A stretch of 64,000 nucleotides of DNA from positions 920,786-984,785 of the forward strand of contig OZ287702.1 of assembly GCA_965649825.1 (NCBI GenBank), in the 5' to 3' direction. A program made the position numbers and the translations under genes. This DNA comes from Penicillus capitatus. Its lineage: Eukaryota > Plantae > Chlorophyta. Numbering within the stretch: position 1 is the stretch's first letter; each line of letters begins with the position of its first letter. The notes beneath the pieces are model-generated. The model saw nothing but the letters and a program-made list of their open reading frames with translations. It ran no database searches and was not told where the DNA came from. Shown piece by piece: positions 45,757-61,688 of this stretch.

Positions 45757-46798
<1,042 letters not shown>

Positions 46799-47387: not shown

Positions 47388-50186
47388 CTAATAGATGCCC
47401 TTTGTGGCAGTTTTGGCACAGCATTCGATACACTGGGAACTGAGATTTGAAGGCTGACTGTCATCCAGATAATAGCATTCCCTGCTCTTCATTTCTCCAC
47501 ATCGTTTGCACTGCTTCTCCATTAACTGTGTCATCTTCGTGCTCTTCAAATGATATCCATTCCATACAAAGTTGTTCCCATCGAACTTCTCAAGCGAAGA
47601 TGGGACCATCTCACATCTAGACGGAACATGATGTGTGATCGTCACACTTTTTGGTCCATCTGACTTCAGCTGTGTATTTAGAACACTCTCTGATGTGAAA
47701 CGGCGATGCGATGCTGGCCGAGACGGTTCATCGGAATCCTTCTCGGTATCGGAATCGGCACAGGAGGCATTCCACAGATGCTCACCTCCGCCCGGATCCC
47801 GCACTCTTAAGGCATCGCATTCAAAGTCAATAAGATCCAGTACTTCTTGATATCCATGCGTCAGACGACGCCTCTTGTGGGTGCGAGGCGTTCCGACGAG
47901 CCGAAGATCCTCTTCCTCGTCTCTGCATCTCTGGCAAACGCGCGTCGTTCTATTGGGATAGAAGATCGACTTGGCGAAATGTATCGCGGATTTCGATCGT
48001 CCGCAGCGCACACAGCATCTTCTGAGCTTTCGATTGGATAGGCGTCTTCCGGCCATTCCATTGCCTCGGCGACATTCCTTGCACAAGGGACAAAGGCCGT
48101 CCGGCAACAGAGGATTGGCATCGAATTCGATCCAGTTCTTGTCCACGTGGCAGCCAACACAGACACGATGCTGTGCAGACGTCACATCCGCCATCATCGC
48201 ATCCTCGTCTTCGTATCCCGGATCGGCAGAACCGGCTGAGCTCTCTGGCAGCAATGCATCCACGTAGTTCAATACGATCTCCATGTCTGCATCGTCGACA
48301 TCTTGCACGTGTCCCTGTCGGGCAGATTTGTTGATCGAATTCGTCGTCGTGCGTTTCTCCACTGATTTCTCTGTCTTATTCTTGGCTTCTTTTGCGCATT
48401 TTTTGCAGATGGATGCATAGCTATCTTCTTTGGATTTGTCGCGATAGAACTCTCCGACCGGTTTCTGATGGTCACATCTGGAACATACTTTTTCGACGAT
48501 GGCTGTCTTCTTTCGAAGCGGCTTTCGTGGAATCTTTTTCCGCACGACGTCTGCATTTGACGTCTTTTCTTCGACGCCTCCGTTCGGCGTCCCGTCGCGT
48601 CCACGTTTCTGGCACTGGCGACATCGGGATCGCAGGCCACTCGGCTTCGAAACATCGCGTCCGAATTCACTGGCTTTCTTGAAATGCCAGCATCCGGTGC
48701 AGTACTTCGTCACGTTCCCTTGTTTATCCTTAACCGTAGAGCATCCGGTCAACCCCTTTTGCTTCGGCACTTTGCTATTTCCTCCTCCGCGTTCCGACCC
48801 TTCGCCCTTGCGACGCTCTTCGGTCGGTCGTACGGATAGTACACTCAGTGCCGCGAGTTTGCCTTGGCCGTCGGCCTCCCCCGAGGGATCGCATCGGTCG
48901 TCGGTTACGCGGCGACTGCGCTTGGATGATTTCTTCTCTCGAAAGACCCGTCTCCGACCCTCCGGAGCCTCTCCAATCTCATCGTCCAATGTCATGAAAT
49001 CGGGCTCGCGTGTCTTCTGACTCTTGCGCCGATTTCTCTTGCTCCGCGTTGGCTTGACGGTTGGAAAATAGAAATCGCCATTGTCGTCGAGCCCCTCGTT
49101 CACCTGGCCAATCTCTGCCTCTTCTTCGATGACTGGCAGATCGACACCCGTGCCCTTTCGGGCTTTCATGCATTCCATGCATCGTGGGCGAAACCCTGCC
49201 TTCGTGTAGGAGTCCCGGTAGAAATGATCCAAAGGCAGCTCCAGTTCACAGCTGCAGCAGTGCTTGCTCATCAGAGGAGCATTCGCCTCTGTACACGAAT
49301 GGCATTTCAGGGTAAAGGGCTTCTGTCGTGCCTTGTCAAACTCATAGACCGGCTTCCGTTCCCCACATGCTGCACAGATCGCCGTCCCTGACAGTCCAAT
49401 GTGTGACTCCTTCTTCTTCGCCTTCTTCTGCATCGCAGGTGGCTTCTCCTCCACCTTAAGTTCGAGCACATCGCCCAATTTCTCTTTCTTGTCTTGACGT
49501 GCCTTCGATTCACATGCTTTGCATCTCGATCGTAGTCCCAAGGGTTTATCCTTGTGTTTCGTGAAGCTCTTGTAGGATTTCATGACACCACAGGTTGAAC
49601 ACCTGGCATGGCATCTGTGGTGATGATGCATGGAGTGCTGTTGTGGTCAGGGTTTCACTTTTTGAATTCCTCCTGTTCCCGATGTGTATGAGATTCGTCT
49701 CCTGCCAAAGAGGAAATGGCCATGTCACAGTACTCTTGCACAATTTCCTCTGGTATTCCCAATACCTTCGTTTTGACCTACGACCAAAAACGCCTGTCGC
49801 GTTGCCCTGTGGAATGGATGGAAGGCGCGGACCGCCTGTTTCAGCTGTGTCGCGTTATGGTGATTCGCGTCCGCGAGTTCCTGCAGCGTCGCAAATACTC
49901 GACGTAGGGGTACGAGTTCCAAGTTGCGTTTCTTTGTTCCGGCCACGAGAATGCGTTGGCCTCCTGTGCGCTCCCTCACGAATAGTTTTGCTCCGAAACG
50001 ATGCTGCAGTTCGGTACTGTTCTGCGCGAGCTGACCCTCTTCAGGGGACGCAGCAGTATCGCCCCCCATTCTCGCCAAGCACACGTCATACGCGTCGTCG
50101 GAGATGAGCTCCACTGGATTCCGCGCACTGTACGCATGGAGTATTTGTATAAAGAGTGTTTCGTCGACGCCGCCGGCATGCAACAT
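47388..50186 (-). CDS. 899-aa protein: degenerate integrase-H2C2-like N-terminal module plus eight CxxC-x~19-23-CxxC zinc ribbons
   Basis: Exons 50186-49833, 49777-49659 and 49614-47388 (introns of 55 and 44 nt, GT-AG) join in frame to 2700 nt, merging two ORFs the track lists separately. Confidence 0.7.
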
Positions 50187-50451
50187 CGTTGCGTGCCCGC
50201 CCTTTTGTCGCAATCGAAAATGTCGCTTTCTCTAAAATGCACACACGAATTCCCTCACTGCGTCCATTCCCTTGTCGAGACACGCACCACCGAGGGTGGA
50301 AAGAGCACAAACCTCGCTCCTTGCTAAAAGCGACGGTGGCTCAAAATGCGAAATGCAAAGTCTGCGAAGCGCAAGGTCATTAAATGCGCACCTTGCTGCG
50401 TCAGTCAAGTTGTTGCGTCAATTTGCGTTGTTGCTGGTTGGTCTTTCAAAA

Positions 50452-51231
50452 ATGAACACTGAAACCGAAACTGAAGATTCTGAAGTGACCGGCTCCGGCG
50501 AAGAGGAAGAGGAAGAGGATGCCTCGTGGATTTCTTGGTACTCCGGTCTTCGCGGAAACGAGTTCTTCTGCGACGTCGACGAAGAATATATCCAAGACGA
50601 GTTTAACCTCAGTGGACTCTCTAGTCAAGTACCTTACTACGACTACGCCCTTGATTTGATACTCGATTCCGAAAGTCCCAGCAGCGAACAGTTTACTGAA
50701 GAACAGCATGAACTCATCGAGGCTGCCGCTGAATTGCTCTATGGACTCATCCATGCTCGATATATACTGACGGCCCGGGGACTCAGTCAGATGTTAGAAA
50801 AATACAAGAACTGTGACTTTGGCAAATGCCCTCGAGTGCATTGCAATGGACAGCCGTGTCTCCCAGTGGGAATGTCGGATATTCTGCGTCAGTCGACTGT
50901 CAAGATTTTCTGTCCGAGATGTCAAGATGTCTACTGTCCTCGGTCAAAGTACCAGGAGAATATCGATGGTGCCTATTTTGGGACCACATTTCCACATTTG
51001 CTTCTCATGACTTATCCGTTGCTTCGACCACCCAGGCCAACAGTGGAGTACACCCCTCGGGTGTTTGGATTCAAGTTACACCCTACTGCTTTTGACCAGA
51101 AACCTTCTCCCACCCAGAACGGAAACAGCCGTTCCACGATGTCACTCTCTGTGAAATCTGCGACGACCACGACAGCAACACCGGCGGCTCCAGCCAAATC
51201 CAAGCCCGCAAATGTGGAAGAGAGGAAGTAG
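50452..51231 (+). CDS. CKB: Casein kinase II regulatory (beta) subunit, intronless
   Basis: [46 protein letters not shown]...CPRC and [12 protein letters not shown]. Confidence 0.97.
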
Positions 51232-58902: not shown

Positions 58903-59193
58903 GAACCGGACACCTCGACATCCACCTCCAGCGAACCGGACACCTCGACATCCACCTCCAGCGAACCGGACACCTCGACATCCACCTCCAGCGAACCGGA
59001 CACCTCGACATCCACCTCCAGCGAACCGGACACCTCGACATCCACCTCCAGCGAACCGGACACCTCGACATCCACCTCCAGCGAACCGGACACCTCGACA
59101 TCCACCTCCAGCGAACCGGACACCTCGACATCCACCTCCAGCGAACCGGACACCTCGACATCCACCTCCAGCGAACCGGACACCTCGACATCC
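58903..59193. repeat. Perfect 30-bp minisatellite, 9 full copies plus one partial
   Basis: gaaccggacacctcgacatccacctccagc starting at 58903 and every 30 nt to 59173. No spacers. Confidence 0.98.
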
Positions 59194-59910: not shown

Positions 59911-61688
59911 TCAACAGAAAGAGGGCTCATCCGGCCAGACTGGGTAAGGCGATGGCGACGAGTACATGTATGGCCGCTGAGGAAAAAGCGGCTGCGCCTG
60001 TTGCGCGGATGCCGTCGCCGCCGGTAGGAGCTCATCCGGCCAGACTGGGTAAGGCGATGGCGACGAGTACATGTATGGCCGCTGAGGAAAAAGCGGCTGC
60101 GCCTGTTGCGCGTATACCTGACCCGCCGGCAAGAGCTCATCCGGCCAGACTGGGTAGGGCGAAGGCGAGGAGTACATGTGTGGCCGCGAAGGAAAAAGCG
60201 GCTGCGCCTGTTGCGCGTATACCTGCCCCGCCGGCAAGAGCTCATCCGGCCAGACTGGGTAGGGCGAAGGCGAGGAGTACATGTGTGGCCGCGAAGGAAA
60301 AAGCGGCTGCGCCTGTTGCGCGTATACCGGCGCCGCCGGCAAGAGCTCATCCGGCCAAACAGGGTAGGGCGACGGCGAGGAGTACATGCATTGCCGCGGA
60401 GGAAAAAGCGGCTGCGCCTGTTGCGCGTATACCGGCGCCGCCGGCAAGAGCTCATCCGGCCAAACAGGGTAGGGCGACGGCGAGGAGTACATGCATTGCC
60501 GCGGAGGAAAAAGCGGCTGCGCCTGGTGCGCGTATACCGGCGCCGTCGGCAAGAGCTCGTCTGGCCAGACAGGGTAGGGCGACGGCGAGGAGTACATGCA
60601 TTGCCGCGGAGGAAAAAGCGGCTGCGCCTGGTGCGCGGATGCCGGCGGCGGAGGACATTGGTGCGGCGGAGCCTGTTGCTCGGATTGCTGCGGTGCTGGT
60701 CTTGGATCCTGCGGCGCAGATGGCGGTGGATGATTGCCCTGCCAGCCAGAACAAGCGTAAGGAGTCGAGTCATGTGTGTGGATGTGGACTTACCTCCGGG
60801 ATGCCTTGGCCGGAAGCGAGGCGCCGTTGTCGTTCCGTGGCGGAAACTCGACGGGGGCGCCTCGTCATTGTCGTGTCCTGTCCGGTTTGGCCACCGGGTG
60901 GTCCAAACCGGACAGGGGGCTCATTGTTAGGCGCCATCTGCGCCGTCGACTGGGCTTTGAGCGCCCAGAATAACTCCTGCCTTGCGGCATCATCCAGCCC
61001 CTCGAACCCCCTAGGGGGGTACTTCCCCCTAACCTCCCGCAGGGTTATCTCTGAGAACCTACAGAGCACAGAAAAGGTTAGTCTCCGTCATGCAGAGCGA
61101 CGTGTCTGTAGGCCGCGTCAGCACGCATGACGGAGAAACGCGCGAAGAGCCGCATGCTGCGCGGCCGGATGGCCACTAGCTCTTCTCCGGCTTTCGGCGT
61201 CCCGACAGTCGGAAAAGCTCTCGCGGAAGGGGATAGCGCGAGAAAGCCAGAGCATGGCTCAGAAGCCGTAACGCATGGCGGCGACGGAGGAGGAGGACGG
61301 AGAACACTTACTCTTTGCCGGGGAACGTATATTTGGGGTCGTTGGCACATGGCGTCGTGGTCTCGCAGTCCATCTTCGGCAGAGAACGCGCGCGCAAAAA
61401 ACAGACAAAAGGTCAGTTACAGCCTGGGGAAGTCCTTTTGACGCCTTGGTTACAGCCTAACGGTCAGAGGACACGGACATGAGAGGTCTCTGGTCTCCGG
61501 GGGTGGATGTTGGGGGCCGACTCGTCGCAGAAGTCGATCACAGGAGCGTCGTGGCACGGATTCCTTTCAGTCGACGTCGTTCTCCGTGGAGCTGGACGCT
61601 CGCAGAAGCCCCGAAGTGTCGTTTGCCATCGATCTGCAGGCATCCTTCGTTGTGCTCGGACACTCGGAGTGGCCGGTGATGCATGCAC
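59911..61688 (-). CDS. Intact orphan spliced gene encoding a Pro/Tyr/Gln-rich protein with 7 x 35-aa repeats (384 aa from ATG 61373; about 454 aa with an upstream exon)
   Basis: Exons 61373-61312, 61058-60794 and 60738-59911 join in frame (GTAAGT donors, ACTAAC branch point, introns of 253 and 55 nt). Optional exon 61688-61479 is also in phase. Repeat-core substitutions are all synonymous in this frame. Confidence 0.75.
59925..60655 (-). repeat. Coding tandem repeat, 7 x 105 bp in three subfamilies (2+2+3)
   Basis: gctc(a/g)tc(c/t)ggcca anchors at 59925, 60030, 60135, 60240, 60345, 60450 and 60555. Confidence 0.97.

Follow-up and report, generated by a model that had tools for sequence, protein, structure and literature searches.

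A spliced gene of the green alga Penicillus capitatus predicted to join an orphan N-terminal domain to eight phage nuclease-type Cys4 fingers

Results

Gene structure

The stretch of DNA analyzed in this work (the window) comprises 64,000 nucleotides of the green alga Penicillus capitatus (GenBank assembly GCA_965649825.1, contig OZ287702.1, positions 920,786 to 984,785 of the forward strand). It is nuclear eukaryotic DNA with about 50% G+C and ordinary housekeeping genes, and its minus strand carries, between positions 50186 and 47388, a gene whose predicted product combines an N-terminal domain without detectable relatives and eight four-cysteine (Cys4) zinc fingers of a type associated with phage nucleases. 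The gene model consists of three exons and two GT..AG introns and encodes 899 amino acids (aa). An initial annotation, made from the sequence alone, had proposed that two introns join two open reading frames (ORFs) into a protein of this length, and the model was reproduced exactly. The ATG at 50186 is preceded, at a distance of 13 codons, by an in-frame stop codon. Searched against 5.8 billion protein clusters, the 747-aa ORF that holds the fingers returned only six relatives: the Caulerpa lentillifera gene models P0004 (892 aa) and P0006 (911 aa; EukProt), and four prokaryote-style ORF calls on genomic contigs, here designated L001 to L004. The components of the gene are the following:

49833..50186, minus strand: exon 1, codons 1-118, encoding most of the N-terminal module
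49778..49832, minus strand: intron 1, 55 nt, GT..AG, phase 0, at the same position in L001-L004
49659..49777, minus strand: exon 2, 119 nt, containing the best-conserved stretch of the N-terminal module, VLGIPEEIVQEYCDM, and an acidic linker ending in FKK
49615..49658, minus strand: intron 2, 44 nt, GT..AG; an alternative acceptor makes it 56 nt
47388..49614, minus strand: exon 3, about 2.2 kb with the stop codon included, K/R-rich, containing the eight zinc fingers and conserved linear motifs

The proposal that the N-terminal ORF and the finger ORF form one spliced gene is well supported by the fused gene models of Caulerpa, by the shared intron positions, by the lack of an upstream ATG in L002 and by the low ratio of nonsynonymous to synonymous substitution rates (dN/dS) described below. 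In both C. lentillifera models the N-terminal module is fused to the fingers in a colinear arrangement, and removal of intron 1 from the window gene yields the junction LKQA|VKTKVLGIPEEIVQEY, which is colinear with P0004 and P0006. In L001-L004 the N-terminal module is found just upstream of the finger ORF, on the same strand and in shifting frames. Both introns occur there at the same codon positions and with GT..AG borders, intron 1 measuring 43-55 nt and intron 2 43-56 nt, and their lengths are not all multiples of three. The AA|GT donor of intron 2 is kept in all loci. An orthologous exon 1 is present in L001-L004 and in two additional loci, L006 and L007, which were reached through orthologous exon-1 ORFs from a profile search with the N-terminal module; a matching exon/intron layout is thus observed in six further loci, as well as in the two C. 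lentillifera models.

The precise 3' border of intron 2 admits a second solution. An AG located 12 nt downstream of the first acceptor is also in frame, and its use would extend intron 2 to 49658-49603, with exon 3 starting at 49602, and give rise to a protein of 895 aa. The resulting junction (FKK|CSTC) fits those of the orthologues (FRK|CTGC, FKK|CMVC and FKK|CSVC) better than FKK|CHARCSTC does, and it leaves FKK immediately followed by the first finger, the arrangement seen in the orthologues. The 12 nt in question (49603-49614, encoding CHAR) present three differences with respect to L001, a value above exon divergence.

An array of eight Cys4 fingers

The Cys4 units start at residues 11, 86, 125, 311, 383, 491, 540 and 708 of the 747-aa ORF. 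Seven of the eight follow the spacing C-x2-C-x22-C-x2-C, and the remaining one has x20. The initial annotation had pointed to eight spaced CxxC units, and their number is well beyond chance expectation: when the protein was shuffled 5000 times, such Cys4 units averaged 0.055, with a maximum of two, and 17 CxxC motifs are observed versus 2.1 expected. The units are distributed as follows:

49512..49601, minus strand: zinc finger 1, CSTCGVMKSYKSFTKHKDKPLGLRSRCKAC, matching PHROGs at E 1e-6
49293..49376, minus strand: zinc finger 2, with x20 spacing, in tandem with finger 3
49170..49259, minus strand: zinc finger 3, the best conserved, with 80% identity to Caulerpa
48612..48701, minus strand: zinc finger 4, a Cys4 unit
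48396..48485, minus strand: zinc finger 5, with the strongest match to phage profiles
48072..48161, minus strand: zinc finger 6, CVGC...CPLCKEC, with one extra Cys
47925..48014, minus strand: zinc finger 7, a Cys4 unit
47421..47510, minus strand: zinc finger 8, the C-terminal Cys4 unit

The four Cys are the only invariant positions among the units, and the eight fingers presumably bind zinc through them. Identity is 67% between orthologous fingers versus 30% between paralogous ones, and the eight-finger array therefore predates the split from Caulerpa, each finger being separately constrained and specialized. The AlphaFold model of fingers 2 and 3, with a predicted local distance difference test score (pLDDT) of 76, shows the units as treble clefs, in which the first CxxC forms a knuckle within a beta-hairpin and the second opens a helix, and not as classical zinc ribbons. 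Hence, of the zinc-ribbon label applied in the initial annotation, the Cys4 composition of paired CxxC motifs holds, but the predicted fold is a different one. The whole protein produced no significant match in Pfam, and a profile of the finger alignment compared with PDB sequences returned only noise (L37, Spt4 and PacI, E>0.1).

The protein has a mass of about 101 kDa and an isoelectric point (pI) of 9.0. The K/R-rich linkers ascribed to the 2.2-kb exon are apparent in the pI of exon 3 (9.2), which is net positive nearly throughout, and in its basic clusters (KKAKKK, SKRNRRK, KRSRR and HKRRR), which resemble nuclear localization signals (NLS). Among the fingers, 1, 4, 5 and 7 are basic, and 3, 6 and 8 are neutral or acidic. 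Two conserved elements lie outside the fingers:

48237..48275, minus strand: acidic/hydrophobic linear motif VLNYVDALLPESS, kept in all six aligned proteins and followed by an S/E/D-rich stretch of the casein kinase II (CK2) consensus type
47772..47840, minus strand: non-finger motif LDLIDFECDALRVRDPGGGEHLW, conserved in the alignment

Affinities of the finger module

The clearest affinities of the fingers are with phage proteins. PHROGs families 2633, 1035, 2340, 2255 and 5558, annotated as endonuclease VII, HNH endonuclease, endonuclease or Lar-like, were each matched by 20 to 24 of the 24 single units searched, with best E-values between 3.8e-6 and 7.6e-10, and the whole ORF matched the same families over two to five stretches with E-values between 2.8e-33 and 3.9e-18. 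These matches cover the N-terminal, finger-bearing part of the profiles. In tblastn searches, a 53-aa piece around finger 5 retrieved 659 phage records (best E 3e-5), and the whole 747-aa ORF retrieved none among phages at E≤1e-3. The arrangement that underlies the annotations can be seen in Aeromonas phage 4_D05 (YP_010053011.1) and Pseudomonas phage Milchi (XPP60696.1), where the 30-residue finger unit precedes an HNH domain. In Gordonia phage GMA3, a protein with two Cys4 units (YP_009188669.1, L005 686-1051) adjoins a helicase gene and has no Endonuclease_7 or HNH match; its annotation as endonuclease VII was probably passed on transitively through the finger. Together, the profile and tblastn matches and the phage finger-HNH proteins confirm the association with phage HNH and endonuclease VII proteins that the initial annotation had put forward.

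The phage finger and the window units share more than the 30-residue C-x2-C-x22-C-x2-C framework and significant profile matches. In both, the first CxxC is followed after about four residues by a Lys or Arg and at about +8/9 by an aromatic residue, an F/Y-x-R/K-D motif is present, and the second CxxC is preceded by a basic residue. On the other hand, the phage proteins have one unit or a pair of units and, in most cases, an HNH nuclease domain after them, whereas the window protein has eight diverged units within about 740 residues, long basic linkers, no nuclease, an unrelated N-terminal domain and a spliced eukaryotic gene. No Pfam match to HNH or Endonuclease_7 was obtained and no catalytic His motif (H-N-H or HxDH) is found in the units. 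The earlier remark that neither a nuclease nor a DDE core was visible is likewise sustained, for no part of the protein matches the HNH, Endonuclease_7 or rve families of Pfam.

A second, weaker affinity is with Stc1, also mentioned in the initial annotation. Among Pfam families, Stc1 (PF12898) is the one that single units match most often (8 of 24, best E 1.6e-4); the alignments are confined to the second half of the profile, and the scores lie below the Pfam gathering threshold of 24.8 bits (15.7 for unit 1, 10.6 for P0004). It is also the top PDB match of fingers 2 and 3 in Foldseek, where the Stc1 tandem finger 2LUY was retrieved with E 0.017 and probability 0.93. The likeness is recurrent, if sub-threshold in Pfam, and the overlay with 2LUY is weak (template-modelling score, TM, 0.34-0.37; root-mean-square deviation 13.7). 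LIM domains fill ranks 2-20 of the same Foldseek list and are not among the best 25 of the 29 Pfam families matched by the units. With Stc1 the window protein would share tandem Cys4 treble-clef fingers in a eukaryotic nuclear-type protein with disordered tails, but Stc1 has one tandem pair instead of eight fingers and shows no similarity outside them. LIM domains, in turn, are double treble-clef zinc modules with contiguous fingers, a two-residue linker and mixed Cys/His/Asp ligands, whereas the window fingers have all-Cys ligands and stand at least 11 residues apart.

The N-terminal domain

The second component of the protein is an acidic domain (pI 5.6) located at the N-terminus:

49709..50186, minus strand: N-terminal orphan domain of about 140 aa, approximately residues 7-141, split by intron 1

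In the AlphaFold model of the P0006 orthologue (pLDDT 80, predicted TM-score 0.69) this domain presents the element order alpha-alpha-(alpha)-beta-beta-beta-alpha-alpha-alpha. Pieces of it found no match in Pfam, NCBIfam or PHROGs even at E≤10. An exhaustive HMMER search of 1.84 billion representative proteins with a profile of the module gave three matches, all of them orthologous exon-1 ORFs. The alignment profile compared with PDB sequences yielded noise (ribosomal uS7 and Lon, E>0.1), and Foldseek retrieved nothing for the model below E 0.6 in PDB or E 0.19 in BFVD.

The initial annotation had seen in this region a likeness to the zinc-binding H2C2 module of integrases. Integrase_H2C2 (PF17921) gave no hmmscan match at E≤10 in exon 1, exon 2, P0004, P0006 or two orthologous exon-1 ORFs, and the DDE core family rve matched no part of the protein. 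No invariant or near-invariant His or Cys column appears in the alignment of the module from six to eight orthologues, and the integrase zinc ligands are therefore not retained as a conserved feature; the initial annotation had itself granted the loss of most of them. Since the exhaustive profile search returned only orthologues of the module itself, the integrase idea is unsupported.

Distribution and selection

A full-length family profile run against the 5.8 billion clusters recovered the same six proteins and none further. In the databases searched, the family thus appears to be confined to Caulerpa and a few relatives. It was not found in the proteomes of Bryopsis sp. KO-2023 and Ostreobium, though both gave matches to the regulatory subunit CK2-beta, the product of a neighbouring gene described below.

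A dN/dS analysis, as suggested in the initial annotation, reveals that purifying selection acts on every module. Against L001, a relative with 95% identity, the ratio is 0.086 overall (dS 0.28), with values of 0.059 for the N-terminus (residues 1-157), 0.059 for the fingers, 0.099 for the linkers and 0.087 for exon 3. The finger proteins of L002 and L003 share just 51% identity with that of the window, and yet their CK2-beta proteins fall in the same 90% cluster as the window CK2-beta, which points to fast evolution of the family between species in spite of purifying selection. As a separate observation, L004 and L007 come from one sample (run ERR4592244) and represent two paralogous gene copies, mirroring the two paralogues of C. 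lentillifera; the sample probably derives from a species of Caulerpa.

Genomic context

The gene is flanked by the following features:

50452-51231, plus strand: coding sequence of casein kinase II beta (CK2-beta), head-to-head with the finger gene
50187..50451, no strand assigned: intergenic region between the finger gene and CK2-beta, 265 bp between the two ATGs, presumed to be a bidirectional promoter
45942-46750, minus strand: ribose-5-phosphate isomerase A, downstream of the finger gene on the same strand, split by at least one short intron

The head-to-head pairing with CK2-beta is kept in L001-L003, L006 and L007; the upstream sequence of L004, which holds only a 27-aa minus-strand gene fragment, is too short for the pairing to be assessed. 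In C. lentillifera both paralogues are paired with CK2-beta (g1132/g1133 and g9122/g9121), which indicates that the segment was duplicated in Caulerpa and that the two genes of a pair may have one promoter in common. The CK2-beta of the window has 81% identity with that of C. lentillifera, 68% with that of Bryopsis sp. KO-2023 and 67% with that of Ostreobium, values that most likely place the source, a siphonous green alga, nearer to Caulerpa than to the other two. Downstream, ribose-5-phosphate isomerase follows the finger gene in the window, L001, L003 and L004. The finger gene hence occupies a fixed syntenic position across species, and no second copy of it is found in the window.

The searches with CK2-beta also brought up a gene model from the butterfly Leptosia nina (P0013, CAK1548079.1). 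Its 454 aa consist of two tandem CK2-beta copies, 49-57% identical, which account for its high search score; it is unrelated to the organism of the window.

Discussion

The protein described here has an architecture without a match in Pfam, NCBIfam or PHROGs, in agreement with the initial annotation, which had not recognized it; no paper on the family turned up, although no dedicated literature search was made. We consider that it represents a hitherto undescribed, lineage-restricted family of eukaryotic proteins and that its N-terminal domain is probably new. The finger module, for its part, belongs to a type already known, and nuclear proteins with several zinc fingers are common. The main interest of the family resides in the pairing of a finger module, documented elsewhere in this work only in phage proteins of nuclease type, with a domain lacking relatives in both sequence and fold. 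The family offers a handle on what the phage module does and, in siphonous algae, a candidate for a nuclear factor specific to the lineage; it has no bearing on a long-standing open question.

As to function, we favor a reading, evenly poised in our judgment, in which the protein would be a zinc-dependent, multivalent nuclear binder of nucleic acid, whether DNA or RNA. This reading is suggested by the basic character of exon 3, by the predicted helices of the basic fingers and by the occurrence of the phage module on DNA nucleases. In DNA-binding treble-clef fingers such as GATA, the helix that starts at the second CxxC runs into K/R residues, and the corresponding predicted helix of the window fingers often continues into K/R residues as well. 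Nucleic acid would be contacted through fingers 1, 4, 5 and 7, which are basic, and through the basic linkers, and fingers 3, 6 and 8 would recruit partners, together with the N-terminal domain and the conserved linear motifs. The N-terminal alpha/beta domain would most likely serve for interaction or oligomerization, and the K/R-rich linkers are envisaged as disordered segments carrying the NLS-like clusters and short conserved motifs. The finger-only protein of phage GMA3, encoded beside a helicase gene, adds a context of DNA metabolism. Several points weigh on the opposite side. The closest solved structures, the Stc1 tandem finger and then LIM domains, mediate contacts with proteins and not with nucleic acid. 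A basic character is missing in three of the eight fingers, and the N-terminal domain yields no functional clue in family, profile or fold searches. To our knowledge, moreover, the role of the phage module has never been assayed.

The most serious competitor to nucleic-acid binding is an adaptor of the Stc1 or LIM type, in which tandem pairs (fingers 2 and 3, 6 and 7) would act as protein-protein modules that scaffold a nuclear complex without touching nucleic acid directly, for instance by tying together small-RNA or chromatin factors in the manner of fission-yeast Stc1. Stc1 itself is a LIM-like bridge between RNA interference and the CLRC complex (PMC2875855), and both its recurrence among the Pfam matches and its first rank, followed by LIM domains, in the Foldseek search with fingers 2 and 3 argue for such a role, as does the neutral or acidic character of fingers 3, 6 and 8. 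However, every Stc1 match stays under the gathering score and the TM values of the overlay are low, the matches to the phage nuclease-associated module are far stronger, the protein is strongly basic overall and most fingers are single, with long linkers between them, instead of arranged in tandem pairs. We thus deem an adaptor possible, if on the unlikely side.

A different origin was contemplated in the initial annotation, which took the protein for a domesticated derivative of a mobile element with a degenerate integrase H2C2 (HHCC) module at its N-terminus. The case for it consists of a loosely similar pattern and a comparable succession of secondary-structure elements. The Ty3/gypsy-type integrase N-terminus has the layout lvvP..lr..il...H......H....kt......yWPgm..dv..yv..C..C, and the pattern LELVP..RV...L.EL....(10)..VLGIPEEIVQEYC in the N-terminal module is what we take to be reminiscent of it; the AlphaFold model contributes a beta-beta-beta-alpha-alpha-alpha order, and the BFVD search has, at rank 33, a Pol fragment of a foamy virus (E 0.9, TM 0.26-0.31). 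This last match, however, lies at noise level among 723 with E≤10. Neither PF17921 nor rve was matched even at that threshold, the search of 1.84 billion representatives gave three exon-1 orthologues and no retroelement protein, integrases are missing from the PDB sequence matches and from the top Foldseek matches, and the His and Cys ligands are not conserved. Nor is there positive evidence of domestication from a mobile element in a gene that is fixed in synteny and present once in the window. We consequently hold an integrase ancestry to be very improbable. Still less credible, to the point of being nearly dismissed, is the notion of two separate genes, one for a protein of about 150 aa and the other for an independently transcribed 747-aa finger protein. 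The 747-aa ORF does have an ATG of its own in the window, and prokaryote-style gene callers give two ORFs at every locus. Nonetheless, that ATG is located within predicted intronic sequence and lacks conservation: finger 1 of L002 has no upstream ATG within its own ORF, and the sole in-frame ATG upstream of finger 1 in L003 sits in exon 2, in a different reading frame. The gaps between the ORFs measure just 43-56 nt, GT..AG introns of that size restore a single frame in all loci, and the Caulerpa gene models are fused.

Returning to a nuclear binder of nucleic acid, the conserved pairing with CK2-beta and the S/T-x-x-D/E clusters of the protein suggest, speculatively, that it might be regulated by CK2. 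A more ambitious scenario, which we regard as quite unlikely when taken as a whole, can be drawn for the siphonous green algae, whose cells are giant and multinucleate. A nuclease-targeting finger of phage or bacterial origin would have been captured, amplified to eight copies and fused to a domain without relatives, either newly arisen or diverged past recognition, and the outcome would be a CK2-regulated chromatin or nucleic-acid factor sharing its promoter with CK2-beta.

Other features of the window

The remaining genes of the window include those for COP9 signalosome subunit 3, a HEAT-repeat protein, a PIN protein, an F-box/LRR protein and KARI. Rfam and tRNA scans of the window produced no match. 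Two tandem repeats were observed. One, at 59000-59193, is a perfect repeat of 30 nt in 6.5 copies and may begin before 59000. The other, at 59925-60647, comprises 6.9 copies of a 105-nt unit (94% matches) in a G+C-rich stretch (0.62), which explains the long, overlapping ORFs without Pfam match that are seen there on both strands.

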